A stretch of 64,000 nucleotides of DNA, from positions 62,001 through 126,000 of the IMG/VR virus record IMGVR_UViG_3300020608_000013; one strand, 5' to 3'. Both the position numbers and the translations under genes were made by a program. The notes under the pieces were generated by a model. That model saw only the letters and a program-made list of their open reading frames with translations, made no database searches and was not told where the DNA came from. Below, piece after piece: positions 5,112 to 63,500 of this stretch; position 1 is the first letter of the stretch, and each line of letters starts with the position of its first letter.

Positions 5112-7124
5112 ATGGCTTTACCTCCAAATGTTGAAGGCATTGAATGCCGCTTTGTTGTCCCTGTTTCTCCTAAAAAATATGGAGAGGATGACGTACATAT
5201 TATCAAAGAATTAATTCATTATAAAGATGGGACTACTAAACCAAACGTCCGTGTTATTAAAGGTTATAAAAGACCTTATTGGATCACTAAACCTCATTTA
5301 CGTAACTACAACGACAACCGAGAATGGGGACGAATGGAAGAAGTTGATAAGTATGTCGCACAAGACAAAGATTTAATCAACGACGCTGGCAATCGATTAC
5401 AAATCTATGGTAAAAATAAATATAAAGTTTTTAAATCCCCTTATTTGTTCGGCGCAAAGACCTCTGCGTCAGTGTATATCAAACACGCTTATCGGAAACG
5501 ATTTGCTAACATAAAAGAAACACCGTTTAACATTGGTTATCTGGATACTGAGGCAGACTTAGATCGTCCTACATATGTCGCCTATAATCTAAAAACGTAT
5601 AAATTATTGAAAAACACCACTGATTTAGACGAGCTTAAAAAATGGTCTGGGCTTTCTGATAAAGTGTTCAATCTCTTCATCTCTTTCGATGAAGAGTACT
5701 GGTTAGAATTTTTAAAAGATAGTTTAAAGAAGAAAAGAATTACGAACGAGATATACAACAAATTCTTAAACGTGCGGTTACGGAAACATTCACCAATCTC
5801 AATTCTAACCTATGTCACTACAGAAGGCGCTTATGCTTTTGTCGACGAACGCTACCTAAAGAAACAGAATTTAACCGTCGAAGAGATTAACGCGTACACG
5901 AAAGAAAAGATTGACGAAAAGAAAGCAGAGTTTAGTAAGGAAAACAAAGATAAGAATGGTTGGGTGTGGACTAGAGATATAAGTATAAACACAATCGCTT
6001 GTAAGGGTGAGGGCGACATACTGGAAAAAGCCTTCGCCACTATACATAAAAGTAAAATAGATTTACTAGCGATATGGAACATCGCTTACGACATGCCCTC
6101 TATGTTAAGAGCCTGCGCCATTAACGGATTAGAACCTAAACATTTATTCAGCGACCCCTCCGTACCTGAAGAGATGCGTCATTTCAAGTGGTGTCTTGGT
6201 CCGTTGAAGAAAGTAAGTCGGTCAGGTCAAGTAAAGCGTTACGATAAACAAGAACAGTGGCATACGGCTGAATTAACCGCAGGGTTCTATTTCATTGACC
6301 AGATGTGTTCTTACAGTGCCATTCGATTAGGTTCACCTAAAGAGCAATTCTATAACGTAGATGCTATTGCAAACAAACTACTAGGCATGGGGAAACTTTA
6401 CCTCGAAGTCGACGAGGGCATTTACCCAGGGTCTATTGAATGGCACTCTTTCTTAACCAACAACCACTTTAAAGAATATACGGCTTACGCGTTCTTCGAT
6501 GTCATAGTCATGTTATTAATGAATGACTACACTAGAGACCTCGATCTACTATTACCCACTTTCGTCAACAACTCACAGATACGTTCTTTCACTACGAGGA
6601 CACAGATGTTATCCGACAACTTCCAGACATGGCTGATGGATAACGAGAACGCTGCGCTAGGTGCGGCAGGGCTATTATCCGTTTACCAAAAACTTATACC
6701 GAATGTTGATTTAGATGATTGTAATCTACAATTAAGGGGCATTATTGTCAATCTAGATGTGTCGTTAGTACGATATAAGCACCGTAGTATGTTTGAAGAC
6801 GCACCTCACTTAAAGTCAACGGTACGGCGATTTGCGTTCGATATGGATGCCGTCTCCGCATACTTATCAGCTATTGTTCGTAGTAACCTTTCAAGAGAAA
6901 CTTGTCTCTACGAGACTTATGCAATCGATGGTAAATCTACTTACGATATACGGCGAGCAGGGCTTGACCTTTTAATGGGTCATGTGAGCGCCATCGATTT
7001 CTGTACAAATATGTTTAATTTCCCCACCATAACAGAATTGTGTACTGAATATGAAAAAGAAATAGCGCTACTAGATGAAAAGAAAACCGATGACGTACCT
7101 GACTTCAGCGGATGGTTTAACTGA
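5112..7124 (+). CDS. Split family-B DNA polymerase, exonuclease plus motif-A half (phiKZ gp82-like)
   Basis: ExoI YLDTEAD, ExoII IWNIAYD, ExoIII YAFFD, polymerase motif-A-like FDMDAVSAY; adjacent to the gp80-like gene as in phiKZ. Confidence 0.8.
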   Translation: MALPPNVEGIECRFVVPVSPKKYGEDDVHIIKELIHYKDGTTKPNVRVIKGYKRPYWITKPHLRNYNDNREWGRMEEVDKYVAQDKDLINDAGNRLQIYGKNKYKVFKSPYLFGAKTSASVYIKHAYRKRFANIKETPFNIGYLDTEADLDRPTYVAYNLKTYKLLKNTTDLDELKKWSGLSDKVFNLFISFDEEYWLEFLKDSLKKKRITNEIYNKFLNVRLRKHSPISILTYVTTEGAYAFVDERYLKKQNLTVEEINAYTKEKIDEKKAEFSKENKDKNGWVWTRDISINTIACKGEGDILEKAFATIHKSKIDLLAIWNIAYDMPSMLRACAINGLEPKHLFSDPSVPEEMRHFKWCLGPLKKVSRSGQVKRYDKQEQWHTAELTAGFYFIDQMCSYSAIRLGSPKEQFYNVDAIANKLLGMGKLYLEVDEGIYPGSIEWHSFLTNNHFKEYTAYAFFDVIVMLLMNDYTRDLDLLLPTFVNNSQIRSFTTRTQMLSDNFQTWLMDNENAALGAAGLLSVYQKLIPNVDLDDCNLQLRGIIVNLDVSLVRYKHRSMFEDAPHLKSTVRRFAFDMDAVSAYLSAIVRSNLSRETCLYETYAIDGKSTYDIRRAGLDLLMGHVSAIDFCTNMFNFPTITELCTEYEKEIALLDEKKTDDVPDFSGWFN

Positions 7125-8397
7125 ACACGCGATCGATACTGATAGTCACATTACGTGAAACCGTACCGTGGAAAACAGCCATTAACGCATATAGGAAGAC
7201 ACTACCTAAATCCAACGCGGCTAGTGATATACCATCTACTTTAGCACTAACTGTTTTACCTAAACAATGTTTACAAAAAGCAGAGTCTTTTGTTAAACAA
7301 AACCCAGGTGAGCGGAAAGTTTGCCAAGTGTCTATTAGTCCTGCTAAATCATCTTCTGTTTCAATCAGAACCCACTTACCTTGCTTACGTACTTCACAGC
7401 CAACAAAGGTTGACCTAATCTCTTTACCGATGTACTGGTATAGCCCCTGTTCTGTACCACAGTCCTCATCAACAATTTTATAAGGTGTAGACACTTTCAA
7501 CATGTCTTTAGTGACCACGCCAGCATACATCGTACGATAACCCCGCGAGTAGCTACCATAACGTACAACGTTAAGTATTGCAGGAAATTGTTCATCAGAT
7601 GTTGGCCAACCTTCCTCTAAGGAAGTCAAGATAGGCTCGCTAAACTCGCCAAACGATTCAGGTGTGCCTAGACCGTGAAGAAGTTTTTTACGCGACACCT
7701 TCTTCACTTTACCCGTCAAGAACTTATTATTCGTCGGGTCTTTGGCTAGATGTTGTTCATCAAACGCAGCCAACTCTTTCTCGTACTCATTGAATTTTAC
7801 TGGGTTTTTAAGCTCGTCACCATATTCTTCGATTTTACGTGCCCTGAAGTCTTTGAAGTCGTCTGCCACAACTAGGTTGGTTGGTGTATCTACTACAGTA
7901 GTAACAAGACTTAAATCTTCTAGGAAGTTAACAGCTTTCTTGAACTTGTGCATCTCATACACTTCAATCGTTTCAGGTGTACCCTTACCATTATCAACGA
8001 GTATCGGTGCAATAATATCACTAATCGTCCCTCCGTCGTGGCGTTTCAATAAGAAAGGTAGCTTCCCATTAAACGGGTACATTAAGGAGATGTAGTTACT
8101 GAATATTAGACCGACAGACACATCTTTCAACTCACTAACATTTTTCCATCGTTTATCAAATATACCCGTCCGTTCATCAAGTAAGAATAAAGGACGTTTA
8201 TTATATTGCTTTGGTTTAAAGCTATGGTATTCGCCCTTATCATAGTAGACGTACTCACCGTCGAAACAGTACACGTCATAAGGCTTTGGCGCTTCTGGTT
8301 TATCTGTTTCTATGATACTAAGTACACTAATCATCCATCGACGTTTAACGTACTTATTGTTGAGTAACGCCAGTCTTAAAAAATCATATTTATCCAT
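7117..8397 (-). CDS. Virion RNA polymerase beta' subunit, middle/C-terminal part (phiKZ gp80-like)
   Basis: Bridge-helix-like GSYSRGYRTMYAGVVTK, zinc-binding DCGT...RSPGFC...FCKHCLG, trigger-loop-like LMAVFH. Confidence 0.88.
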   Translation of the reverse strand: MDKYDFLRLALLNNKYVKRRWMISVLSIIETDKPEAPKPYDVYCFDGEYVYYDKGEYHSFKPKQYNKRPLFLLDERTGIFDKRWKNVSELKDVSVGLIFSNYISLMYPFNGKLPFLLKRHDGGTISDIIAPILVDNGKGTPETIEVYEMHKFKKAVNFLEDLSLVTTVVDTPTNLVVADDFKDFRARKIEEYGDELKNPVKFNEYEKELAAFDEQHLAKDPTNNKFLTGKVKKVSRKKLLHGLGTPESFGEFSEPILTSLEEGWPTSDEQFPAILNVVRYGSYSRGYRTMYAGVVTKDMLKVSTPYKIVDEDCGTEQGLYQYIGKEIRSTFVGCEVRKQGKWVLIETEDDLAGLIDTWQTFRSPGFCLTKDSAFCKHCLGKTVSAKVDGISLAALDLGSVFLYALMAVFHGTVSRNVTISIDRVFS

Positions 8398-9287: not shown

Positions 9288-9683
9288 GTGATAATGAGCA
9301 CAGAATATATAAATGATGTCTTCGGCATAGATGACATACTCACAGAACTAAAACCCGCTCCTAGTGAAATGGAGCGTTTACGTTTAGTAGTATTAGATGC
9401 CCTCGATAAATCAGATGTGAACAACAAACCCATTGAGGAGTATTTAACAACCGACCTACCTAAAGAAATCAAAGCCATCGAAGATGGTGTAAGTAAAATA
9501 GAAGCCTACAAAGATACTTTAGGTGAAACAGAGGATATTGACGAGTTAATGGTTGTCATTAACAACTTAGTTGAGATTGGTACTAAAACAACAACCATTA
9601 CTGAAAAACTCACTAATTTATCTAATAACACAACAGGAAATGAACGACATGACGAAAACGTACTATTGGCGCGATCTACATGA
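9288..9683 (+). CDS. Hypothetical acidic, coiled-coil-like protein
   Basis: 131-aa ORF with GGA upstream; first gene of a + strand unit. Confidence 0.6.
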   Translation: MIMSTEYINDVFGIDDILTELKPAPSEMERLRLVVLDALDKSDVNNKPIEEYLTTDLPKEIKAIEDGVSKIEAYKDTLGETEDIDELMVVINNLVEIGTKTTTITEKLTNLSNNTTGNERHDENVLLARST

Positions 9684-9894
9684 ACTATTAGACGATGTAG
9701 TTTCAAAAACGAACAATCGTAGCGCTCTGTCCAAAACATTAGTAAATCGTATTGATACTGTACGATCACTGCTACCTACGACCAACACCCCTGTCCAACA
9801 AGACGAACTTAATAAATTTAGTGAATTACATTACACTATATTAGAGTTAAATGAAGCGTTAGATTTACATATTTTCAAAGGTGGAGTACAATGA
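9649..9894 (+). CDS. Small hypothetical protein
   Basis: AGGA at 9635-9638 supports ATG 9649 (or 9640); stop overlaps the next start (ATGA). Confidence 0.55.
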   Translation: MTKTYYWRDLHELLDDVVSKTNNRSALSKTLVNRIDTVRSLLPTTNTPVQQDELNKFSELHYTILELNEALDLHIFKGGVQ

Positions 9895-11312
9895 AAAACC
9901 CATTCACAACCCTAACCATTATTGATAAAAAAGGGAAAAAGACAGGTTTACCTGTTTTAGATTTACCCTCTTTGCGTAAAGACACTATTGAACAAATCTA
10001 CAGTACAGAATACTTAGAAGGTGTTGATACATACTCTAAGGCCTCAGAATGGGCTGAGTGTATCCGTGAAGGCGGTGTTCTAGAAATTGATAATGGAGCA
10101 CTTAATAAAGTCGCAGACGATCCTAATAGAAACTGGTCTCAACAGTATGAACACGATGGGAAGGTGTTTAAGTCTAGTGAAGGCATTTTCAACGAGTTAA
10201 CTAATCGTCAACTTGAAGGTAAAAGAGCCATCGCTTATTACCAACGTACTCGTAAGATTGGTAATGTGTTCAACGTCTACCTACCGCATTCTGGTTTCTG
10301 GGTATCTGTCGAACCACCATCGAATACAAGTATCGTTAACCTAACCTCATTAATCACACAAACCACTATTTCACTAGGTCGTGAAACTAAAGGGTTGTAT
10401 TTATCATGTGATAACATTTTCACCAATTCACATATCACCGACCATGTTCTAAGTCACATTAAACAAACGAACATTAAAAATAGTCCGCATGAAGATTTAT
10501 CGATCATGCGTAAATTAGTAAAACCACAAGACTTACCTATTGTATTCTGGGGAGGCGCTTGTAGTAAATATCGTGATGGGGTAGTATATAGACATGCGTG
10601 TATTAACAAAGATGTTGAGAAACATTGTAACACGATCTACGAAGAGAAGTTGAACTTAGACAATCTTTGTATCACAGACTACGATGTACTAGATGAGGTA
10701 CAGAAGAAGAATCTGATTCAAAAAGGCGCTGGTAGTCTTGAACTGGAAGATATTGAGTCTTATCAAAATAAATTACACAAACCTGTCACGTACGTTAATA
10801 AGACCGAGTTAGATGGGGAAGAACTCACTATTAAAATCACGATCGAGTCTCCTAACCTACATGACTATTTCAATACAGGCATGGACTGGATTAATGGGTT
10901 AGTTGATACGGTTGAAGGGTTTATTGATTCTAGTAAAGAACTCGATCAGGATAAAGAGAGTCTATTGGAAGTGTATAACAAATCAACTAAGATGCGTACG
11001 TACCACCACTGGATCACTAAGATTGAGCTTGATACTAACATCATCACTGACAAACAAACTATCGGTGAACTGTTAACCAATATATCCTCAACAAGTGACG
11101 ATGGTATATTCATTGCTGAAAGTGTGAATAACTACATTAATCAAACAACGATTAGTTTAGTAGGTATACCAGAGTTTGATTGTACGAACTGTGGTAAACT
11201 ACAGGAAACTATAGAGCACGAGGGACTTTCTAAAGTTATTCCGTTGGATTACATGCAGCTTTTTATACTACTAGCTTTGGCACAATTAGCAAAGACGGCC
11301 CGCCAAGGCTAG
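9891..11312 (+). CDS. Conserved phiKZ gp77-like protein with CxxC; possible tail/baseplate assembly chaperone
   Basis: 473 aa, GGAG RBS, C-terminal FDCTNCG knuckle; lies between the gp75-like and gp79-like genes. Confidence 0.6.
   Translation: MKNPFTTLTIIDKKGKKTGLPVLDLPSLRKDTIEQIYSTEYLEGVDTYSKASEWAECIREGGVLEIDNGALNKVADDPNRNWSQQYEHDGKVFKSSEGIFNELTNRQLEGKRAIAYYQRTRKIGNVFNVYLPHSGFWVSVEPPSNTSIVNLTSLITQTTISLGRETKGLYLSCDNIFTNSHITDHVLSHIKQTNIKNSPHEDLSIMRKLVKPQDLPIVFWGGACSKYRDGVVYRHACINKDVEKHCNTIYEEKLNLDNLCITDYDVLDEVQKKNLIQKGAGSLELEDIESYQNKLHKPVTYVNKTELDGEELTIKITIESPNLHDYFNTGMDWINGLVDTVEGFIDSSKELDQDKESLLEVYNKSTKMRTYHHWITKIELDTNIITDKQTIGELLTNISSTSDDGIFIAESVNNYINQTTISLVGIPEFDCTNCGKLQETIEHEGLSKVIPLDYMQLFILLALAQLAKTARQG
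11260..11312 (+). promoter_or_regulatory. Candidate programmed -1 ribosomal frameshift signal
   Basis: CTT TTT slippery T-run (11260-11264), 6-nt spacer, 11-bp stem CTAGCTTTGGC/GCCAAGGCTAG (11271-11281/11302-11312, one G-U pair); the -1 frame is open from 11234 to 11719. Confidence 0.6.
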
Positions 11313-11719
11313 AAAGGCAACACCATGTTACTAATAGAGATTTTAGTAACGGTATTAATCTAAAGCACTACGTTAACGAGGTATTAGGGTCTGTAAATGT
11401 TAAAAGTAGGACGGATCGTCAGATCATTATGAATGACATGTATCTCCATACGTTCAACATCTACCCTGCGTTAAAACCTGATAGAGTGTTAGGTTTTGCA
11501 GCTCTCCATGAGGCAGAGACCAACATCAACGACCACTTGTTAAACATGTATCACAGGGATTATTTAGACTACCAAATAAAACAACTTTGGGGCTACACAT
11601 TCTCAGAATACATGGATTTAACTTACTCGTATACAAAAAAATTAAACATGTTAAGTGAAGAGGAACTCCAACGGCGTTCCTTAAGAGAGCAACTACTTAC
11701 TGAAAACATGGGAGACTAA
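11264..11719 (+). CDS. -1-frame extension of the gp77-like gene (gp78-like); track ORF 11429-11719 is only its C-terminal part
   Basis: Frame is open from 11234 with no ATG, GTG or TTG before 11429 and reads ...FYTTSFGTISKDGPPRLERQHHVTNRDFSNGINLKHYVNEVLGSVNVKSRTDRQIIMNDMYL... Confidence 0.6.
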   Translation, partial: YTTSFGTISKDGPPRLERQHHVTNRDFSNGINLKHYVNEVLGSVNVKSRTDRQIIMNDMYLHTFNIYPALKPDRVLGFAALHEAETNINDHLLNMYHRDYLDYQIKQLWGYTFSEYMDLTYSYTKKLNMLSEEELQRRSLREQLLTENMGD

Positions 11720-11721
11720 AT

Positions 11722-11759
11722 TAACAACACACACTACCAGAATGTAGTGTGTGTTGTTA
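11722..11759. terminator. Bidirectional terminator hairpin
   Basis: 16-bp perfect stem TAACAACACACACTAC/GTAGTGTGTGTTGTTA between convergent genes. Confidence 0.8.
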
Positions 11760-60582: not shown

Positions 60583-63500
60583 TTATTTTAAGTAATTGCT
60601 AGAAGTTATCTTGCTAAATTTCTTACAAATGAAGACAGACATGCCTAGTAATTTAGCAGAGTTCACAATACGCGCCGCATCACTACGACCACCAAACCGT
60701 AGATCAATTTTAGTCCCGTCTTCGGCTTCCACGTTATCTGGGTATACTTCAGCGATAGTTGCCTTCAACTGATGTGAGATAACCAGTTTGTCTACCGTGT
60801 TAATCGGGATGTCTTTTACCAGAAATATTTTAAGTTCAACCGTATTAGGTGGGAGAGGTTGCCCTTTTGTACGATAACGGCTATCAACAAAACCTGTTAA
60901 AGTTTTGTCTTTAGTACGCTCTTTTAACTCTATATCGGCTTGCTCAACAACTTTCCTTAATTGAGGGCTTAAATCTTCTAACGGTGCGTTATACCGAGCC
61001 TCAATACGATCAACGGTGGCGAGATATTTAGCAGTTGGTTTGTCACTTGCACGATGTTTGATTAAATCAGAAGTCTCTTTATCAAACATCTCTAATGTAC
61101 TAATCGCACTACTTTCAATATACATTAAAACATCGTCAGGTTTAAGGGATTGACCGACCTTCACAATCTTGCGAATTGTATAATCGGCAGGTACTTGTAT
61201 ATTACGTTCGTATATTTTATGCGTCTTAAGTCGTTTAGTGAGCGCCGTAGAGACTGTTACCGAATCCTCCCAAGTGATGCGTTCTTCAGTATAAGCCATC
61301 GTAGCTGTTAAGTAGGGCAGGTAGATTAGTTTAGCAGGGTCGTGTGGATCGGGTTTAAAATAGCTTTTGTTATAGGCAAGCGCATCATAAGGCTCTACTT
61401 TATCACCGACCTTCAAACTCGTTGTTATGTCATGAATATAATTACTCCCTTCAAAAGACCCGTAGTGTCTACCTAAGAAAACATCTTCTGTAGTTCCGTC
61501 TTCGTACTCGACTACTAACCCTTTATCAGAAACCTCTTTAACAACACCTTTACCTTTTGCGTGTCTAGCATGTATTTTATTCACACGGTAAGGGATAGTT
61601 TTCTCAGCCCCTGTACGCACTATAGGGGACTCGTAACCACTTTTCGGTGCGATGACGTGCGACTCCATAATGGTCGCCATATTTGCCCGTTTAGGGTCGT
61701 CTTGCGTAGAGAAGGGGTTTTTCATATTACTGGTCGATATGAGTCGATTGGCAGTCTCTGGGTTATCATCCCATTTCTGTCCTTGCCCACGTAATGTTTT
61801 AAAATCAGGGTCGTTTGTTAAGTATTTAACAATACCTACATCAGAGGAGTCAACTGTCGCTTCTGAATAAATACCCTTTTGTGTTTTATGTACTGCGCGA
61901 AGTTCTTCAGGTATAGCGTCTTTAGACCGCCCCCCTTCACCAACCATTGTGACCACTTCCTTAGACTTGATGTTTTGGAAGGGGTTGATGTCACGCTCTA
62001 GTTCTACACAAGGGTCTTGCATTATCGTCAACCATGTTGCGTTAGGCTTCATTTCTGGTTTTTGACGACGTTTAGCTTTCCTATTCTTGTAATCCTCGAC
62101 CGATTTAAACAATTCTTTATAAGCGATGCTCGGTAGACGTTCATAACCTCTAACGCGTGACATTAACTCACTGTTAGGGTCTTCATGGTAATCGAAAGTT
62201 AATAGTTCTACAGCACGTACAAGTAACGGAATGAACTCGTGGGGTTCGCCCATAGTAATTAACAAGTCTCTTGAGATCGGGTCTATGAATAGTTCGTTAT
62301 AAGTCTCTATTTTCACCAGACCTCGCGCTTCTACGTTTAAGGTGTTTAGTATACCTAATAACCCTTCAGGGGTGTCGTAGTGAGCGACATTGTAATTTAA
62401 GTTGGTTTTGTTGTAGGCGGCTAACCCGCTAAATAATAACTCCTCTTGAAAGTTTATTCGGTTAAATATTAGGTGGTAGTCTTTAAAGGTTATTGCATAT
62501 TGATCAGGTTTTAATACATATTCCTCACCAACAGGTTTTACCGTTACATCTCGTGCAAAATGTTCAATACAGTAAGATAGCCCTTTTAAAGTCGCTAAGA
62601 TTATAATGACAGGGATATTTCTCCCCATAAGTTTAACGGTTGCGTACTCTGTGAGCGAGTGTGTATCGAAGCGTAAAACATCCGTTAAATGTTTTTTATC
62701 AACGTTGTTGTTTTCGTTTAAATAAGTGACTACCCCATCGTTGTTTAAGAAAAGTAATTGCCCTCCGTTATTAGTAACACCTATGAAAGTACCGTACTTT
62801 TTTTCAGGCTTGGTGATGTCTTTTGTAGTCAACGTTTGACGTGTTTTATGGTTAAATGTTAAACGTGTGTCGTCACTAGTCTCGATCCAGTCAAATGATT
62901 TTGCTAATGCGCTATAGTGTCGACCCTGTTGTTTAAAGTTGTTGTCGAAAACAGGTGTTGGGTTAAGTGAATAGTTTTCATATTTTAAACTAGTTTGGTT
63001 CACCGTTTTCTTTAACCATACCGCATAGTTATTTGCCTTACGAATACCTCGTTGTACAAATATTTTACTGACTGCGCTAGAGATAACGACATTTTCAGGA
63101 CCAATTTTTCTAAGCGGCATATCGACGGTTTGCTTACGCATCCGTGATAGATTACCGTTATTCATGAAAACACCGTCTTCATCTACCACAGGTAGCTGTA
63201 TAGTGAGTGTCGTTGCCTCGCCTTGTATGGGTTTATACCTTACTTTATACAACATGTAATTATCCTTAACAGATTTGACATGTTGTTTACTATACCCTTC
63301 TAAAACCCAACCACCTCGTTGAATGTGTGAAATGGTGTTAACCATATCCTTTTCCAACAGTTCTTCGATGTACTGTGTATTATCGTTAAATAACGATGAC
63401 TTTAACATCGACGCTTTAGTCACGCCTTTTATTTTAGGGAGTTTATCCCCTTTTAGTATAAGTTCGTCAGGCTTGATAGCAGTCAAATCATCTAGTCGGA

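Follow-up and report, generated by a model that had tools for sequence, protein, structure and literature searches.

Does the phiKZ gp77-like gene of an uncultivated jumbo phage end where its reading frame ends, or do some ribosomes slip back one base at a run of T's and continue into the next gene? The question arises in a 64,000-nucleotide stretch of IMG/VR record IMGVR_UViG_3300020608_000013 (positions 62,001 to 126,000 of that record; hereafter the window, in whose coordinates all positions are given). A sequence-only reading had proposed an unannotated programmed -1 frameshift fusing a gp77-like gene to a gp78-like gene, based on a start-less -1 frame, a CTT TTT slip site and a stem 6 nt downstream, and had compared it to the G/GT frameshift of long-tailed phages. 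We first re-examined the sequence, and found that every statement made about it holds; the observation is therefore confirmed. The features of the locus are as follows.

9571 to 9894, plus strand: upstream gp78-like small gene, with a likely start at ATG 9640 or 9649 and a TGA stop that overlaps the ATG of the next gene (ATGA).
9891 to 11312, plus strand: ORF1, the phiKZ gp77 homologue and 0-frame product of 473 aa (stop TAG 11310-11312), with four invariant Cys (C237, C246, C431, C434).
11231 to 11233, plus strand: TAA in the -1 frame, which sets the upstream limit of the interval in which a -1 shift can occur (11234-11309).
11258 to 11267, plus strand: slip region G CTT TTT ATA, with 0-frame codons CTT TTT at 11259-11264 and the T-run at 11260-11264; tRNA-Phe on TTT 11262-11264 can re-pair on 11261-11263, and the next -1 codon is TAT 11264-11266.
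11271 to 11312, plus strand: candidate stimulatory hairpin, with arms 11271-11281 and 11302-11312 and loop 11282-11301; the 3' arm contains the 0-frame stop.
11264 to 11719, plus strand: the -1 frame extension of 151 codons plus TAA (11717-11719); 11264-11428 has no start codon, and 11429-11719 is the 96-aa ORF that a gene caller reports.
11722 to 11759, no strand assigned: 16-bp bidirectional terminator-like hairpin that closes the transcription unit of the gp78-like gene, the gp77-like gene and the -1 ORF.

The -1 frame is open from 11234 for 161 codons, and its first ATG, GTG or TTG is at 11429. The predicted products would be 473 aa and 458 + 151 = 609 aa, with ...DYMQLF joined to YTTSFGTISK at the junction. 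The resulting 65-codon start-less lead is the second longest among the 73 open segments of at least 100 codons in the window (median 5), and the longest lies antisense to a real gene; from base composition, the product of the probabilities of no stop and no start is about 7e-4, so that this is more than chance would give. The stem is both the minimum-free-energy and the centroid structure, with 11 bp including one G-U, a 20-nt loop, a 6-nt spacer after 11264 and an energy of -20.1 kcal/mol (z = -2.35; 3 of 200 shuffles fold as well).

We next asked what the two genes are. ORF1 belongs to the phiKZ gp77 family, a conserved Chimalliviridae gene: it matches phrog_4585 at E 5.8e-75 over residues 45-469, and tblastn recovers 166 phage records including PHIKZ077 (E 8e-31, 88% coverage), consistent with two alignments of the family. 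The downstream gene was not identified correctly by the sequence-only reading. It is the homologue of phiKZ gp76.4, as the extended 161-aa reading matches phrog_12109 from residue 28 (profile positions 8-136 of 147, E 8e-9) and not the gp78 family phrog_14050, whereas the 96-aa ORF alone matches phrog_12109 at only E 7e-5. In phiKZ the gene order is gp78, gp77, gp76.4, and in the window the gp78-like gene likewise lies upstream; its assignment rests on a weak BLASTP match (E 0.01) to AgentSmith gene 10, which occupies the gp78 position. We also suspected a second frameshift or assembly error in this upstream gene, given the ORFs at 9288-9683 and 9571-9894, but only the second ORF resembles the AgentSmith gene and the first overlaps the divergent minus-strand gene, so this idea was rejected. 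A megablast of the locus against phage records returned nothing and a word-indexed protein search returned only the window's own protein, indicating that the lineage has no close relatives and that comparison had to be distant.

To evaluate whether the arrangement is conserved, a comparison that the sequence-only reading had itself proposed as a test, we examined 46 loci, comprising the window and 45 relatives (40 distinct downstream proteins) from phiKZ, 201phi2-1, PhiPA3, RAY, Goslar, PCH45, SPAsTU, RSL2, AgentSmith and metagenomic contigs, among others. In all of them the next gene lies in the -1 frame, and that frame is open back to a T-run at one aligned Phe-Phe codon pair, although the distance from the T-run to the 0-frame stop varies from 24 to 133 nt. 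The distance from the slip site to a conserved Glu anchor takes 13 different values (80-99 codons), all in frame, so that at least 12 indels kept the frame, which would have a probability of about (1/3)^12 if unconstrained. All 45 relatives have X_TTT_TTN, which is canonical or near-canonical; the heptamer is T_TTT_TTT (the usual form), A/G_TTT_TTT, T_TTT_TTC or T_TTT_TTA. The first Phe codon is TTT in 25 of 25 representative lineages although TTC is preferred elsewhere (TTT:TTC of 2:24 in RSL2, 2:21 in RP12 and 3:22 in PhiPA3), with a joint probability of about 1e-12.6.

The start-less stretch also behaves as coding sequence. The first ATG, GTG or TTG lies anywhere from 8 to 101 codons after the slip site, often inside conserved protein sequence (codon 85 in phiKZ, 87 in AgentSmith and 55 in the window), as seen in an alignment of the window's extension with 36 relatives. 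A profile search for the downstream family found 1417 representative clusters, in which the N-termini assigned by gene callers scatter over profile positions 4-71 of 167. In three of the related loci (designated L004, L005 and L007), the stretch between the 0-frame stop and the first start has dN/dS of 0.05-0.13 and 0 stops in the -1 frame, while the other frames give more than 1.3 with 4-8 stops. In the window, homology to the N-terminal part of gp76.4-like proteins begins at about nt 11315, 114 nt before ATG 11429, and no Shine-Dalgarno motif with a near-cognate start is present there. We also looked for natural in-frame fusions, and none appears among the best 150 of the 1417 representative clusters, so both products seem to be kept.

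Some elements of the site are less well supported. By homology the window's site is T_TTT_ATA, or equivalently G_CTT_TTT, and not a canonical X_XXY_YYZ heptamer; its nearest relatives have CTT TTT TTC/T at this position, and the second Phe codon of the family's slippery heptamer has been lost in the window. The window therefore has the weakest site, and the only non-canonical one, among the loci examined: tandem slippage is impossible, only tRNA-Phe can re-pair, and efficiency may be very low. A hungry-codon pause at ATA is not supported, because ATA makes up 31% of Ile codons in this phage and the window holds no tRNA genes. U_UUU_UUU and U_UUU_UUA are weaker shift sites than A_AAA_AAG in E. 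coli (PMC5009743). The hairpin, although correctly spaced in the window, is not conserved; relatives carry different, non-homologous hairpins at spacers of 2-10 nt, and a consensus structure computed across 15 Pseudomonas-type loci gave only 4 weak pairs, leading us to reject the idea of a conserved stimulatory structure.

To gain insight into function we combined structural and contextual evidence. Neither Pfam nor NCBIfam gave anything meaningful for ORF1, for eight homologues or for the -1 product, and searches of the PDB by sequence profile, by Foldseek and by a wide structural alignment (VIA-align) gave no match above noise; a model of the -1 domain matches only its own family. The AF2 model of ORF1 (pLDDT 73) has Foldseek hits in BFVD to several T4-like baseplate hub subunit or hub assembly proteins, with E 1e-4 to 5e-2, probability about 1 and target-normalised TM of about 0.5, a modest similarity on which the functional assignment solely rests, and Atlas neighbour clusters carry PF12322. 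By contrast, the PF12322 HMM had no hit above its cut-off in ORF1, in the eight homologues, in five phiKZ-like genomes or in the window's own genome, while T4 as a positive control gave two, and hhalign and BLASTP of gp77 against T4 gp26 and gp51 were not significant. In phiKZ, both PHIKZ077 and PHIKZ076.4 have 0 transposon insertions (PMC12676376 supplement), and gp77 is not among the 40 virion proteins (PMC13250141). Assembled phiKZ-type RNA contigs run uninterrupted across gp77 and gp76.4, end just after the gp76.4 stop and keep the genomic T-run length, although such contigs show co-transcription, carry no information on translation and hide minor species.

Taken together, these results favour a -1 ribosomal frameshift, to which we assign a probability of roughly 0.8. 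In this view most ribosomes stop at TAG 11310-11312 and make the 473-aa protein, while a minority slip back one base when tRNA-Phe sits on TTT 11262-11264 and re-pairs on TTT 11261-11263, probably helped by the hairpin, then read TAT at 11264 and continue to TAA 11717-11719. The longer product would comprise gp77 residues 1-458 plus a 151-aa linker and small helical domain, the gp76.4 homologue. Our analysis directly demonstrates the anatomy of the window, the shared -1 arrangement across the loci examined, nucleotide-level selection for the T-run and protein-level selection on the start-less -1 stretch; that the longer protein is made, that the slippage is ribosomal, that its efficiency is probably low, that the hairpin stimulates it, and what the proteins do are all inferences from sequence, fold and context. 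Given the modest similarity of the predicted fold to the T4 gp26/gp51 hub-assembly chaperones, the absence of gp77 from the phiKZ virion and its essentiality, the two isoforms probably act in a fixed ratio as non-structural tail or baseplate-hub assembly factors, as lambda gpG and gpGT do. The interpretation offered by the sequence-only reading is thus partly supported: its core idea is strongly supported by the comparative evidence, but the fused partner, the nature of the slip site and the status of the hairpin required correction.

Other explanations are possible but appear unlikely. The two could be separate genes, with the downstream protein initiated independently by termination-reinitiation or at a non-canonical start near the gp77 stop, and the T-run conserved only because gp77 needs Phe-Phe. 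All 19 GenBank records inspected annotate two genes, and in some lineages a start codon does sit at or just after the 0-frame stop (an ATG overlapping TGA in RP12, a TTG in 201phi2-1 and an ATG at +23 in the D6 group), where separate initiation could add to or replace frameshifting. However, Phe-Phe does not require TTT TTT, and the codon choice goes against genome usage in GC-rich phages; the -1 frame stays open back to the T-run even when the overlap is 111-133 nt (LPKP23, Kodama and PCH45); and the frame relation is tied to the T-run, not to the stop codon. Moreover, in the window, phiKZ, AgentSmith, RAY and the related loci L004-L007 no ATG, GTG or TTG exists before 51-101 conserved codons, and the start-less stretch is under strong purifying selection.

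Transcriptional slippage, in which the phage polymerase adds one U to part of the transcripts, is similarly unlikely. Runs of 7-8 T occur in many lineages, homopolymer runs are recognized slippage sites (PMC5009743), Chimalliviridae use their own multisubunit RNA polymerases, which may or may not be faithful on such runs, and the title of Vladimirov et al. 2022 (cited in PMC10885494) suggests a non-ribosomal mechanism for T4-like tail-chaperone genes. Many lineages nevertheless have only 5-6 T (the D6 group, PhiPA3, Noxifer and the window), which is short for efficient polymerase slippage, and the run is always phased as X_TTT_TTN, although the Phe-Phe codons would impose that phase anyway. 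Least likely is that a homopolymer assembly error or recent mutation split one gene in the window, or that ATG 11429 is the true start and the open lead is chance. The record is metagenome-derived and its T-run is the shortest and least canonical, but the same two-frame layout occurs in 45 independent relatives including many isolate genomes, and no sign of indel errors was found in the neighbouring gene; the upstream homology, the improbable lead and the lack of in-frame fusions among the best 150 representatives also argue against it.

We found no prior description of this frameshift in our literature searches, in which the gp77 hits in the Goslar and PCH45 papers refer to unrelated genes, and it is annotated in none of the GenBank records inspected. 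As phiKZ-like phages are the main model for the phage nucleus and are candidates for phage therapy, it matters that an essential, family-wide gene pair appears to be mis-annotated in every genome inspected, with the downstream small hypothetical protein given arbitrary truncated starts and a fusion product of roughly 600-700 aa missing from proteome lists. Recognising the frameshift would add a protein isoform to an essential assembly gene, suggests how these phages control the ratio of two assembly factors, and offers a candidate for a tail or hub chaperone function that has not been assigned in this family. It also supplies a large natural series of U-rich bacterial frameshift sites, in more than 600 clusters at 50% identity, with diverse downstream structures and with one lineage, that of the window, that has lost half of the slippery heptamer. 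A more far-reaching possibility, which we consider tentative, is that this is the missing tail-assembly-chaperone system of nucleus-forming jumbo phages. In that case gp77 would be a greatly enlarged relative of the T4 hub chaperones acting as the short form, and the fusion would be the long form that recruits tube or hub subunits to the tape measure. The principle of a fixed ratio of two isoforms made by -1 slippage would then be conserved from lambda to Chimalliviridae, in a protein family and genome position where nobody has looked, and the window lineage would be a natural variant that manages with a single-tRNA slip site plus a strong hairpin.

Compared with lambda gpG/gpGT and the conserved tail-assembly-chaperone frameshift of long-tailed phages (Levin 1993; Xu, Hendrix & Duda 2004; P2 E/E+E'), the inferred arrangement works in the same way: a -1 shift near the 3' end of a morphogenesis gene would give a short major product and a C-terminally extended minor product that share the N-terminus, and the arrangement is conserved across very divergent phages while sequence is not. 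P2 uses a T-rich heptamer (T_TTT_TTG). Neither lambda product is in the virion (PMC5009743), and gp77 is absent from the phiKZ virion atlas. Membership of that family is unproven, however, and fails on synteny, size and Pfam hits. The pair does not lie between the tail tube and tape measure genes, as phiKZ gp77 sits beside head genes gp79/80 and small ORFs and the putative tape measure orf181 is far away (PMC12676376); the short product is 470-600 aa, not about 100-150 aa; there are no Phage_TAC Pfam hits; and similarity to the HK97 tail chaperone (Z 3.8) and to the Atlas Phage_TAC_13 row (TM 0.14 by query and 0.45 by row) is at noise level.

T4 gp26 and gp51, which are listed as hub assembly chaperones (PMC3004832), are like gp77 essential and non-structural, and T4 gp26 ends with CxxC...FF-x-LL, which by eye resembles the gp77 C-terminus where the slip site lies. 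T4 gene 26 also gives two products, but by internal initiation. Beyond the lack of a significant sequence or profile match, gp77 is more than twice as long, and T4 genes 26 and 51 are separate, divergently transcribed genes without a T-run or -1 extension at their 3' ends. With the signals of E. coli dnaX (A_AAA_AAG plus hairpin) and HIV-1 gag-pol (U_UUU_UUA plus stem-loop), the locus shares a slippery run followed by a 5-9 nt spacer and a stem-loop, and AgentSmith uses exactly U_UUU_UUA while most relatives use U_UUU_UUU. It differs in that the window's heptamer allows re-pairing of only one tRNA, no upstream Shine-Dalgarno-like stimulator was seen, and the stimulatory structure is not conserved between lineages. 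Lastly, the Pakpunavirus/Andersonviridae tail-chaperone frameshift with the conserved GTTTTT motif (PMC12846349) was also found by comparative genomics and has an invariant poly-T motif near the 3' end, an uninterrupted -1 frame and a downstream ORF routinely annotated as a hypothetical protein, but that locus is a recognisable tail chaperone immediately upstream of the tape measure gene, in a different phage family and protein family.

In the window, ORF1 ends at a TAG stop and the next ORF that a gene finder reports lies in the -1 frame relative to it. That frame has an upstream TAA and is then open for 161 codons, of which the first 65 contain no ATG, GTG or TTG. The features of the locus and its surroundings are as follows.

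7121-7483 (+): longest start-less open segment in the window (69 codons), antisense to the 426-aa minus-strand ORF 7117-8397 and most likely non-coding
About 9640-9894: gp78-like gene, upstream of ORF1
9891-11312 (+): ORF1, 473 aa, with its TAG stop at 11310-11312
11231-11233: TAA in the -1 frame, after which that frame is open
11259-11264: CTT TTT in the 0 frame
11271-11281 with 11302-11312: 11-bp stem with one G-U pair and a 20-nt loop, after a 6-nt spacer
11291-11294: A_AAG (0-frame GCA AAG) within the overlap, in the hairpin loop
11325-11363: 12-codon 0-frame mini-ORF, its ATG preceded by AAAGG at 7 nt, in the gap between the ORF1 stop and ATG 11429
11429-11719: -1 frame ORF of 96 aa as reported by a gene finder
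11722-11759: 16-bp perfect inverted repeat with T-tracts on both strands, forming a bidirectional terminator between the convergent + strand unit and the minus-strand genes from 11765

The 11-bp stem is both the minimum-free-energy and the centroid fold, at -20.1 kcal/mol with z -2.35. A shift at the T-run would give the junction ...DYMQLF|YTTSFGTISK... and a 609-aa product. The start-less lead is the second longest of the 73 long open segments in the window, for which the median is 5 codons, and it is improbable from base composition. No promoter-like or terminator-like site was found in the 116-nt gap, and the mini-ORF within it, which is out of frame with the conserved -1 reading, is probably fortuitous. 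The sequence-only reading, which had described this slippery site, spacer, stem and start-less frame, was therefore accurate as an observation.

ORF1 is a homolog of phiKZ gp77 (phrog_4585, E 5.8e-75), and a tblastn search matched it to 166 jumbo-phage records. The window belongs to a 212-kb uncultivated virus record with terminal repeats, which has no close relatives in the libraries searched. As the gene order in phiKZ is gp78 -> gp77 -> gp76.4, the downstream ORF corresponds to gp76.4 (phrog_12109) and not to gp78, as had been proposed from sequence alone. The extended -1 reading matches phrog_12109 better than the 96-aa ORF does (E 8e-9 against 7e-5), with the match starting at residue 28, nt ~11315, which is 114 nt before the first start codon. 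Four Cys residues of ORF1 (C237, C246, C431 and C434) are invariant in 20 gp77 homologs, suggesting a zinc site, and ORF1 lacks the acidic N-terminal extension of about 70-100 aa found in most homologs.

To evaluate whether this arrangement is conserved, we collected 45 related loci, comprising 19 annotated phage genomes (phiKZ, AgentSmith, D6, FLC9, RAY, Vibrio sm033, Klebsiella LPKP23, RP12, RSL2, Noxifer, SA002, pEa_SNUABM_29, JM-2012, Goslar, Kwan, SPAsTU, Kodama, PCH45, and LucasX), 23 IMG/VR contigs, and 3 further metagenome contigs. In every one of these the gene after the gp77 homolog is in the -1 frame, and that frame is open back to a T-run located at the same aligned Phe-Phe codon pair, just after the conserved IP(L/I)D motif. 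The 0-frame heptamers are T_TTT_TTT in most loci, with A/G_TTT_TTT, T_TTT_TTC, T_TTT_TTA (AgentSmith), and G_TTT_TTC (Noxifer) in others. The distance from the run to the 0-frame stop varies from 24 to 133 nt, and the distance from the run to a conserved Glu in the downstream domain takes 13 different values, all in frame. None of the GenBank records marks a ribosomal slippage. The published annotations instead leave gaps of about 215 nt before truncated downstream ORFs in phiKZ (gp76.4, 81 aa; gap at 3776-3993 of L001, our phiKZ locus) and AgentSmith (gene 12, 77 aa; 3839-4053 of L002, the AgentSmith locus), while in RAY the annotation starts the ORF upstream of the T-run (2460 of L028, the RAY locus); all of these are symptoms of a missing start codon.

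Three independent lines of evidence indicate that the T-run and the -1 stretch are functional. First, the first Phe codon is TTT in 25 of 25 representative lineages, including GC-rich phages that use TTC almost exclusively elsewhere in the same genes, with a joint probability of about 1e-12.6. Second, there is no conserved start: the first ATG/GTG/TTG lies 8 to 101 codons after the slip site, often deep inside conserved sequence, and in 150 representative proteins from a 1.8-billion-protein library the N-termini assigned by gene callers scatter over profile positions 4-71 of 167. Lastly, in three loci (L004, L005, and L007) the 61-83 codons between the 0-frame stop and the first start have dN/dS of 0.05-0.13 and no stops in the -1 frame, while the other frames give values of more than 1.3 with 4-8 stops. 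Protein that is conserved but has no start codon must be reached from upstream, and the only conserved entry point is the T-run.

The site in the window itself departs from that of the family. Protein alignment and the three nearest relatives (CAG/CAA CTT TTT TTC/T) show that TTT at 11262-11264 corresponds to the first Phe codon of the family heptamer, whereas ATA (11265-11267) has replaced the second. The site is therefore T_TTT_ATA, or G_CTT_TTT as it had been phrased from sequence alone; in either case only tRNA-Phe can re-pair, and both descriptions give the same protein. This is the weakest site of the 46, and ATA is not rare in this phage. The well-placed 11-bp hairpin may compensate. 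The A_AAG at 11291-11294 is a possible second -1 slip site, which would give a fusion differing by about 10 residues. Most lineages have some hairpin 2-10 nt after the heptamer, but the hairpins are not homologous and no consensus structure emerges. The 27 nt after the run are highly conserved within the Pseudomonas-type group, but this is expected for a dual-coding overlap, given that the 0-frame tail (an amphipathic TLA..K.. helix) also looks conserved.

An alternative to ribosomal slippage is slippage by the polymerase during transcription. Runs of only 5-6 T in many lineages favor the ribosomal mechanism. RNA-seq contigs of the phiKZ type cross gp77 and gp76.4 without a break, keep the genomic run length, and end just after gp76.4, although contigs cannot reveal minor species. 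Polymerase slippage remains possible, but we consider it unlikely.

Possible functions were explored through structure. The AlphaFold model of ORF1 (pLDDT 73, pTM 0.77) has no PDB match, but beyond its own family it matches T4-like entries in BFVD annotated as baseplate hub subunit, baseplate hub assembly protein, and hub assembly chaperone, with E values of 1e-4 to 5e-2 and a target-normalised TM of about 0.5, and Atlas neighbor clusters carry PF12322. T4 gp26 and gp51, the two PF12322 proteins of T4, are listed as hub assembly chaperones, and gp51 is not in the particle (PMC3004832). phiKZ gp77 is likewise not among the 40 virion proteins (PMC13250141), and PHIKZ077 and PHIKZ076.4 both lack transposon insertions (PMC12676376 supplement). 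T4 gp26, encoded at 1492-2118 of our T4 sequence L044, ends in ...CPECGK...EFFELL*, that is, a CxxC followed by FF-x-L at the very C-terminus, which by eye resembles the gp77 C-terminus (CPxC ... FFTLA) where the slip site lies, but BLASTP and hhalign comparisons are not significant. As sequence-level tests of the T4 link fail, this resemblance is a structural lead and not a family assignment; Vladimirov et al. 2022 is the paper most likely to bear on it. The -1 extension is predicted to be a disordered Pro/Gly-rich linker followed by a small helical domain with no informative matches. Adjacent UniProt accessions in BFVD hit both parts in Leptospira phage LE4 (A0A343LED6 and A0A343LED7), and Myoviridae sp. 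ctLnO19 gave the same pattern; the pair of a hub-chaperone-like gene and a small helical protein may therefore extend beyond Chimalliviridae.

Taken together, the layout of the locus, its recurrence in the related loci, the codon bias at the T-run, and the purifying selection on the start-less stretch are shown by the sequences, whereas frameshifting itself, any contribution of the hairpin, and the role of the two proteins are inferred, as all of the evidence is at the sequence level without protein-level confirmation. The initial interpretation is partly supported, being right in substance, wrong on the name of the partner gene, and optimistic about the slippery site of the window. A programmed -1 frameshift is very likely at the level of the family (about 0.9), and for this window we place the probability at about 0.8. 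Recoding of this type is already established in other phages; what would be new is its location in an essential and universally conserved jumbo-phage gene, and we found no prior description for gp77/gp76.4 or for any Chimalliviridae in literature that excluded most subscription journals.

Mechanistically, the inferred shift works like lambda G/GT and P2 E/E+E', in which a low-level -1 shift near the 3' end of a non-structural assembly gene yields two proteins with a common N-terminus (PMC5009743). The gp77/gp76.4 pair nevertheless fails the membership criteria of that family on synteny, size, and Pfam. A closely analogous comparative discovery, with a poly-T motif, an uninterrupted -1 frame, and a mis-annotated downstream ORF, was recently reported for Pakpunavirus tail chaperones (PMC12846349).
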